Shown here piece after piece: positions 52,429-53,900 of a DNA stretch of 53,900 nucleotides (within the stretch, counting starts at the first letter, position 1; every line of letters begins with the position of its first letter). The position numbers were made by a program, and so were the translations under genes. This stretch comes from Octopus bimaculoides (taxonomy: Eukaryota), in the NCBI RefSeq assembly GCF_001194135.2, contig NC_069000.1, forward strand, positions 46,342,552-46,396,451, in the 5' to 3' direction. Under the pieces are notes generated by a model that had not been told where the DNA came from, made no database searches, and saw only the letters and a list, made by a program, of their open reading frames with translations.

Positions 52429-52539
52429 ACATACACACACTTGTCCAATCCCCAATAACACACATGTACGCACGCGCGTGCACGACATAGCACACAGACN
52501 NNNNNNNNNCGTGCACGACATAGCACACAGACACACACA

Positions 52540-52579
<40 letters not shown>

Positions 52580-52659
52580 ATCTTGGTTGCTTTACCATCT
52601 AACCTAAGTCCCCACACACACATACATCCACACACAGACACATACACACCTTATCAGAC

Positions 52660-52949
52660 AGTTTCAATTCGTCAGCATGAGACCGAGGGTTGCGCGCGGG
52701 CAGGAGAGAGGGTGGTTCGGTTGTGGTAGGGCGTAAGGGGTTACCCTGGTTCTCCCTTGCCCGCCTCTATCTTCTCGGGTCTGCCCCCGCTGCCGCCTCG
52801 GTTCCAACTGTTGCAGCACACCCTCTCTCTCTGCTGGCGAACGTTACTTCAGTTAAATATCGTACACACGTAGCTTCAAGGAAGGCGACGACACGCGCTC
52901 ACACACCAACCACGGCTTCATACGGCGGTTGTCAAGCACGGAGCAAGCA
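52660..52949 (+). promoter_or_regulatory. CpG-rich promoter and 5' UTR of the SNAG gene; candidate initiator TCAGTT at 52849-52854 (TSS about 52851)
   Basis: Abrupt GC/CpG-rich unique sequence in an AT/microsatellite background. GC-box-like CTGCCCCCGC, a CT tract at about -30, no TATA box, and an Inr-like TTCAGTT followed by about 99 nt with no ATG before the SNAG start. Confidence 0.65.
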
Positions 52950-53070
52950 ATGCCACGCTCCTTTCTGTTCACCAATAAGCGATACTTCGCTGCTGCTTTG
53001 CCAGTGAGCAGCCCAACCAACTATGCTTACACTACATACATACAAAGCCACGACAGCGAGGGCGAGCACG
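52950..53070 (+). CDS. First coding exon of a SNAG-domain transcriptional repressor (Snail/Scratch/Gfi/Insm/Ovol-type C2H2 zinc-finger gene); peptide MPRSFLFTNKRYFAAALPVSSPTNYAYTTYIQSHDSEGEH, then a phase-1 intron
   Basis: Manual translation: ATG at 52950 gives MPRSFL, the canonical SNAG N-terminus. An in-frame TAA lies upstream (52854-52856) with no intervening ATG. Purine at -3. Donor ACG|gtaaat at 53070/53071. The unspliced frame stops after 51 codons, which is why the ORF track misses it. Zinc fingers are not in the window, so the subfamily cannot be assigned. Confidence 0.85.
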
Positions 53071-53192
53071 GTAAATCCACTTTTATATTCTATATCTATA
53101 TCTAAGTTATATTGCATATTGAACTATCTACCTCTATATCTATCTATCTGTCAATCTATCTATCAATCTATCTATCTATCAATCAATCAATC

Positions 53193-53467: not shown

Positions 53468-53900
53468 CCTATATATACATATATAAACAAGTTGTTTGTG
53501 CTTGTGTTTATGTTGGCGGTGTGTTTCTCTGTGTGTATATAGGAATTTGAAAGTTATGCATCTCAGGTGTGTCTTCAACAAAATTCGAATCACCTTTAAT
53601 CACCTACAATCTATTGAACAGGTGAACACAATTATTAAACGAGTTAGCTCTGCCATTTCTTCAATGAAATTTATTGTTTACATGGGTAGACGTACATACG
53701 TATGTATGTATGTATGTATGTATGTATACAGTATATATATATGTGTGTAAATGTACACATGTTTTTTTTAATGTTTATACGTACGTAGAGGTATGTGCAT
53801 GTATGTATGTGTGTCTGGATGGGTTGATAAATGATTGAATGAATGAATTACTATATGAAAATAAAGTCGCCTATCTAAACTTTAATTTTAAACGTATATA
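53071..53900 (+). other. Intron 1 (5' part) of the SNAG gene, with (CTAT)n and (CT)n tracts and two CAGGTG E-boxes
   Basis: Follows the GT donor; stop codons and microsatellites; CAGGTG at 53564-53569 and AACAGGTG at 53617-53624. Confidence 0.7.

Follow-up and report, generated by a model that had tools for sequence, protein, structure and literature searches.

Does a short open frame near the 3' end of a 53,900-nucleotide stretch of Octopus bimaculoides DNA (the whole stretch analysed, hereafter the window) encode the N-terminus of a SNAG-type zinc-finger repressor, and if so, of which family? The frame is opened by the ATG at 52950–52952 on the forward strand and covers 120 nt (MPRSFLFTNKRYFAAALPVSSPTNYAYTTYIQSHDSEGEH); an extra G at 53070 brings the exon to 121 nt and phase 1, directly before a GT donor. 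The nearest upstream in-frame stop is the TAA at 52854–52856, no in-frame ATG lies between it and the ATG at 52950, base −3 is a G, and read-through of the donor would meet a stop at 53103–53105. The original prediction had described a 121-nt exon with a start context, an upstream in-frame stop, and a GT donor, and its coordinates and sequence were confirmed. It had also remarked that the exon was absent from the ORF track; this is accounted for by length, because the stop-to-stop ORF around the ATG is 58 aa and falls under the usual 60-aa cut-off. The exon and its conserved core are as follows.

52950..53070, forward strand: candidate first coding exon, 40 codons plus 1 nt, phase 1, encoding MPRSFLFTNKRYF...
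52950..52988, forward strand: conserved core, codons 1–13, MPRSFLFTNKRYF, the sole part with demonstrated homology

SNAG N-termini mimic the histone H3 tail and bind within the catalytic cleft of LSD1 (PMC5066116, PMC5453194). Mutating P2, R3, S4, F5, R8, or K9 of SNAI1 abolishes LSD1 binding, and GFI1 is inactivated by P2A (PMC5066116). The Ki of SNAIL1 residues 1–20 is 210 nM and that of the minimal LSD1-binding hexapeptide, PRSFLV, is 28.4 µM, a difference of about 135-fold that belongs to the residues past the hexapeptide (PMC5453194). In the window peptide the motif begins directly after the initiator Met, and the orthologous proteins start at the same residue. The SNAG core P2-R3-[SAG]4-F5-L6 is present as M-P-R-S-F-L, identical to the start of canonical SNAG-1 (MPRSFLVKK; Snail, Scratch B, Gfi-1/1b), and five of the six residues of the LSD1-binding hexapeptide are found. 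The remainder of the minimal motif MPRSFLVKK, [VI]7 followed by basic residues at 8–9, is absent: the V7-K/R8-K9 of canonical SNAG-1 is F7-T8-N9 in the window, and the basic pair (K-R) is displaced to positions 10–11. The V-K-K part is likewise missing from all five protostome Scratch A proteins to which we compared the peptide.

These reference N-termini were taken from Additional file 1 of Kerner et al. 2009 (PMC2688512), with family labels from Additional file 3, which assigns all five matching protostome proteins to Scratch A.

Capitella scratch 1: start MPRAFLITNKRY, longer start MPRAFLITNKRYRPG... (PMC2688512, Scratch A)
Lottia gigantea scratch 1: start MPRIFMITNRRYF, longer start MPRIFMITNRRYFSN... 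(PMC2688512, Scratch A)
Apis scratch 3: start MPRAFLITHRRY, the same as in Tribolium scratch 3; longer start MPRAFLITHRRYNG... (PMC2688512, Scratch A)
Nasonia scratch 2: start MPRAFLITRRRY, longer start MPRAFLITRRRYNG... (PMC2688512, Scratch A)
Tribolium scratch 3: start MPRAFLITHRRY, longer start MPRAFLITHRRYNL... (PMC2688512, Scratch A)

The window peptide (MPRSFLFTNKRYFAA...) continues as these five proteins do, without any shift in register. The counterparts of its FTNKRY in the annelid, the mollusc, and the three insects are ITNKRY, ITNRRYF, ITHRRY, and ITRRRY, the three insect proteins all starting MPRAFLIT[HR]RRY (PMC2688512), and the window peptide carries the protostome Scratch A signature MPRxF[LM][IF]T[NHR][KR]RY. 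Identities amount to 9/13 with Lottia scratch 1, 10/12 with Capitella scratch 1, and 8/12 with each of the Apis, Nasonia, and Tribolium proteins. When residues 7–13 are scored by ungapped, in-register BLOSUM62 against 41 N-termini, they reach 31 with Lottia, 25 with Capitella, and 16–17 with the three insects (17, 17, and 16), whereas none of the 36 other Snail, Scratch B, and deuterostome Scratch A N-termini scores above 4. That a mollusc, Lottia, scores highest agrees weakly, by seven residues, with a cephalopod source. The window differs from the other protostome Scratch A proteins in having S4 where they have A or I, and F7 where they have I7. It shares with them a motif that begins at the initiator Met in a short 5' exon. 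Beyond residue 13, homology to Scratch A is undetectable.

Could such a match arise by accident, from a random ATG-CCN-MGN-WSN-TTY-YTN that stays open up to a GT in a GC-rich non-coding island? The exon frame does sit in an island, a unique 430-bp segment between (CA)n and (CTAT)n arrays, with no second copy within the window. Its part upstream of the ATG is the following.

52650..52949, forward strand: GC-rich, CpG-rich island upstream of the ATG, GC 0.50–0.58, CpG o/e about 0.7–1.1

The window averages are 0.40 for GC and 0.71 for CpG o/e. Islands comparable to this one make up 6% of the window, and this island's remaining frames run open for 51–105 codons. The length of the exon's ORF carries no weight in such a setting, since the island is also overlapped by a 105-aa ORF in another frame. 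The hexapeptide MPRSFL has a chance expectation of 0.002 per window and about 130 per 2.7 Gb genome, and by itself it is weak evidence at genome scale; the peptide, moreover, was in no database protein searched. All of this would suit a chance origin, and a Bayesian estimate that weighed only the contextual features, namely the island, the open frame, and the donor, put the probability of a real exon at 0.3 to 0.8. That estimate is superseded by the Scratch A match. A random 7-mer of the window's codon-derived composition reaches 31 against any of the 41 N-termini with P = 7e-6, and the pattern [ILVMF]-T-[NHR]-[KR]-R-Y has a probability of 1.3e-6, which, multiplied by the 130 chance copies of MPRSFL, leaves ~2e-4 expected copies per genome. 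By these counts, the 13-residue match is far beyond chance, and an accidental frame is extremely improbable. For a real exon, the island at 52650..52949 would presumably supply the core promoter and 5'UTR; a TTAAATA box at 52853–52859 shares bases with the in-frame TAA stop of 52854.

The first six residues are also the canonical SNAG of Snail, Scratch B, Gfi, and Gsx1, and the peptide might therefore be a divergent SNAG variant of another family (Ovo-like, Gfi, Snail, Scratch B, or a SNAG homeobox such as Gsx). For Gsx, the exon must end by 53102, unlike the long first exon of Gsx genes. The vertebrate OVOL N-terminus is MPRAFLVKK; for an Ovo origin we found no evidence among the compared Snail, Scratch, and Gfi N-termini, and nothing in the window points to Ovo. 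A likeness to GFI1 and Slug can be seen by eye (K10, K11, P18, and Y25; KRYF and PxNY), and it is at chance level: against 90 distinct Gfi-1/1b N-termini (the Gfi-1/Senseless start being MPRSFLVKSKKAHSYHQPR...), residues 7–40 reach a best local score of 28, which is equalled in 213 of 500 shuffles. We accordingly do not claim the SNAG-2-like 'PTNYAY'. The Snail and Scratch B continuation, MPR[SA]FL[VI]KK, fares no better, residues 7–13 scoring at most 4 in register against all 34 such N-termini (PMC2688512) where Scratch A gives 16–31. Membership of a family other than Scratch A is thus very improbable. The original prediction, that a developmental zinc-finger repressor gene has a SNAG-type first coding exon here, is borne out by the Scratch A match. 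Two of its readings are replaced: the FTNKRY continuation, which it had called a divergent or atypical SNAG variant, is the protostome Scratch A form, present in register in five published proteins; and the 'Ovo-like branch' that it had suggested is without support, the match being specific to Scratch A among the Snail, Scratch A, Scratch B, and Gfi sets compared.

We conclude, from the encoded N-terminus, that the coding sequence of a scratchA orthologue very probably starts with the exon at 52950. The Snail superfamily comprises snail, scratchA, and scratchB; protostomes, amphioxus, and sea urchin have one copy of scratchA, and vertebrates and urochordates have lost the gene (PMC2688512). 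Family membership rests on 13 residues, because nothing else that the gene would encode lies in the window. Scratch A proteins have five C2H2 zinc fingers with sequences specific to the family (PMC2688512). Across both strands of the whole window there is no frame for a C2H2 finger, a homeobox, or a Scratch A motif (ELYNL..LAE, STSSNL, YVSMPA), and the pattern hits obtained for zinc-finger and Scratch A motifs are microsatellite artefacts only. The last 830 bases of the window are repeats without a usable frame, so the remaining gene should lie past base 53900. A long first intron is plausible, since scratchA spans 1.3–20 kb elsewhere (Lottia 7.7 kb, Apis 16 kb, and sea urchin 20 kb; PMC2688512).

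Where the exon ends is less sharply indicated. Two of the three GTs within the ORF rank in the top 3.3% of donor scores in the window, and by the rough consensus matrix used here they are about equally strong. They are listed below with a low-complexity stretch that lies between them.

53071..53079, forward strand: donor ACG/GTAAAT, phase 1, approximate PWM score 6.3 bits, top 3.3% of window GTs
53004..53012, forward strand: alternative donor CCA/GTGAGC, approximate PWM score 6.5 bits, top 3.3% of window GTs
53023..53047, forward strand: YAYTTYIQ stretch toward the 3' end of the longer exon, low-complexity, resembling the (TACA)n microsatellites of the window

The exon could therefore end at 53070 or, with the donor between 53003 and 53004, at 53003, giving an exon 52950–53003 of 18 aa in phase 0. 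Homology does not settle the choice because it ends at residue 13, and the 53023..53047 stretch, which matches many (ACAT)n arrays by blastn, has no homology of its own. The published Lottia and Capitella Scratch A models look unreliable right after the conserved N-terminus (Additional file 1 of PMC2688512); the Lottia ...APFQ-GK-IHCVSS... looks like a phase-1 GGTAAG donor that has been translated through. In both species, then, the real first exon may be short as well. A weak hint of the phase-1 donor comes from reading the Lottia ...APFQ-GK-IHCV... as G/GTAAG read-through beside the window's ...GEH-GK-STF.

Searches with the peptide recovered no relative. A search of a collection of 5.8 billion clusters with the 40-residue peptide found no protein sharing even three 5-residue words, and a control alignment of canonical MPRSFLVKK variants in the same word-indexed search yielded no candidate either; these negatives exclude near-identical proteins only, because a word index of this kind does not resolve short motifs. 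Exhaustive phmmer against 1.84 billion representatives returned just two spurious, internally repeated proteins, in a search of a size at which a 12–13 residue match is unable to reach significance. With a chimeric query that joined the exon to Snail, Scratch, Gfi, Ovo, and Insm zinc-finger anchors, the exon was found in 0 of the 120 best hits; the matches were vertebrate Gfi and generic zinc-finger proteins, and were the source of the real Gfi N-termini used above. PDB and Pfam searches with the peptide gave no match, nor did Pfam on the island's other ORFs. A degenerate 12-codon DNA pattern had 0 matches in JGI metagenome contigs, and exact-protein look-ups for three window ORFs returned no records. 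In full-text literature, neither PRSFLF nor SNAG together with cephalopod was found.

The exon thus appears in no annotated or transcript-derived protein searched, as would be expected of a relic, that is, the first exon of a scratchA pseudogene or partial duplicate that is unjoined from functional zinc-finger exons. In an exon that runs to 53070, the 3' half is low-complexity and microsatellite-like, and the window is rich in repeats, gaps, and transposon fragments, which would also fit a relic. On the other hand, nothing is broken in the 13 conserved codons, the start codon, the GC/CpG island, or the two good donors; in the species surveyed by Kerner et al., scratchA never exceeded one gene and was never duplicated (PMC2688512); and the lack of annotation is weak evidence because gene predictors commonly miss short first exons before long introns. 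We regard a relic as improbable, and in what follows take the exon to belong to a working scratchA gene.

For such a gene we infer splicing, downstream zinc fingers, and LSD1 binding. The exon would encode the very first residues of a C2H2 zinc-finger repressor. Removal of the initiator Met would leave a free Pro-Arg-Ser-Phe N-terminus that could enter the catalytic cleft of LSD1/KDM1A in imitation of the histone H3 tail, and the docked N-terminus would bring LSD1-CoREST-HDAC to E-box targets, which the protein would contact through zinc fingers encoded by exons past the window end. The LSD1-contact anchor is intact because P2, R3, S4, F5, and L6 are retained. Affinity for LSD1 may differ, because the residues behind the roughly 135-fold gain of SNAIL1 are not the same here; LSD1 binding by the window peptide would be an extrapolation, T8 and N9 standing where SNAI1 needs R8 and K9.

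The SNAG motif of protostome Scratch A might then form a conserved subtype of its own (P-R-x-F-[LM]-[IF]-T-[NH]-[KR]-R-Y) with a different LSD1 affinity or geometry, or with another partner, a proposal that we consider rather unlikely. The basic pair of this form, the mimic of H3 R8/K9, is displaced by two residues. The form is lost in Diptera, and amphioxus and sea urchin have canonical VKR or VRR. To our knowledge, the literature holds no LSD1-binding test of the Scratch A form. The only studied Scratch A member is Drosophila Kahuli (CG17181), a Snail-like, E-box-binding developmental zinc-finger factor of the presumed orthologous family, which is without a SNAG motif (PMC8722224). Kahuli and its Anopheles orthologue start MTKDQQATPIPEELYNL... 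and MVQEQRPNNVPEELYNL..., respectively, whereas the window gene keeps the motif.

The value of the exon is mainly one of annotation: it would fix the true start of the scratchA gene in this genome, and existing gene models, if any, probably lack the SNAG first exon, since no searched public protein carries it. It also adds a further lophotrochozoan example of a Scratch A SNAG form conserved from annelids and molluscs to insects. Should the Scratch A subtype be real, the exon would serve as a mollusc-type example for LSD1-binding comparison. Whether the Scratch A form binds LSD1 as canonical SNAG does (PRSFLFTNKRYFAAALPVSS versus the PRSFLVKK type) is a modest question, and one independent of this locus.

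The remainder of the window agrees with the original description of about 52 kb upstream without another clear gene. It holds only transposon fragments, microsatellites, and gaps, among which small exons could escape notice. Microsatellites of the (TA)n, (CA)n, (CT)n, (CTAT)n, and (ACAT)n types occupy much of it, 20 N runs of 10–958 bases make up 14.9% of its length and nearly all border (TA)n or (CA)n arrays, and most of the long listed 'ORFs' are translated repeats or gaps. Rfam gave 0 matches in the whole window. The frames with recognizable content are these.

27459..27824, forward strand: mariner-type transposase DDE fragment, 121-aa ORF, Pfam PF01359 Transposase_1, E = 5.4e-13
41479..42269, forward strand: two overlapping frames containing ...PTCGRPFPARIRQIGHSRTH..., within the GC/CpG-rich island 41251–41750
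23523..24002, reverse strand: ORF ending ...WIVVEISCLAVVNIKLKINEKENPYAELLRNLQLLYPDYKFRFIPVIIGALGYV... and running into an N gap, no Pfam match

By its Pfam match, the first of these is identified as a fragment of a mariner/Tc1-like DNA transposon. The ORFs at 41479..42269 had no Pfam match; the ...PTCGRPFPARIRQIGHSRTH... they contain resembles what we take to be the zinc-knuckle tail at the C-terminus of some LINE ORF2 proteins, and the frames are shifted, so the element is probably a decayed retroelement. The reverse-strand ORF looks, by eye, like the C-terminal part of a retroelement protein.

Five more unique islands of 300–550 bp (9501–9850, 13151–13500, 37801–38350, 40651–40950, and 47251–47600), with GC of at least 0.50 and CpG o/e of at least 0.8, are scattered through the 'desert' that precedes the exon and may represent scratchA regulatory elements or old transposon pieces. 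At 52477–52532, a 10-N gap (52500–52509) has the same 23 bases (cgtgcacgacatagcacacagac) on either side. Identical flanks mark an unclosed overlap in a short-read scaffold, so the gap was probably introduced by assembly and has a true length of zero or less.
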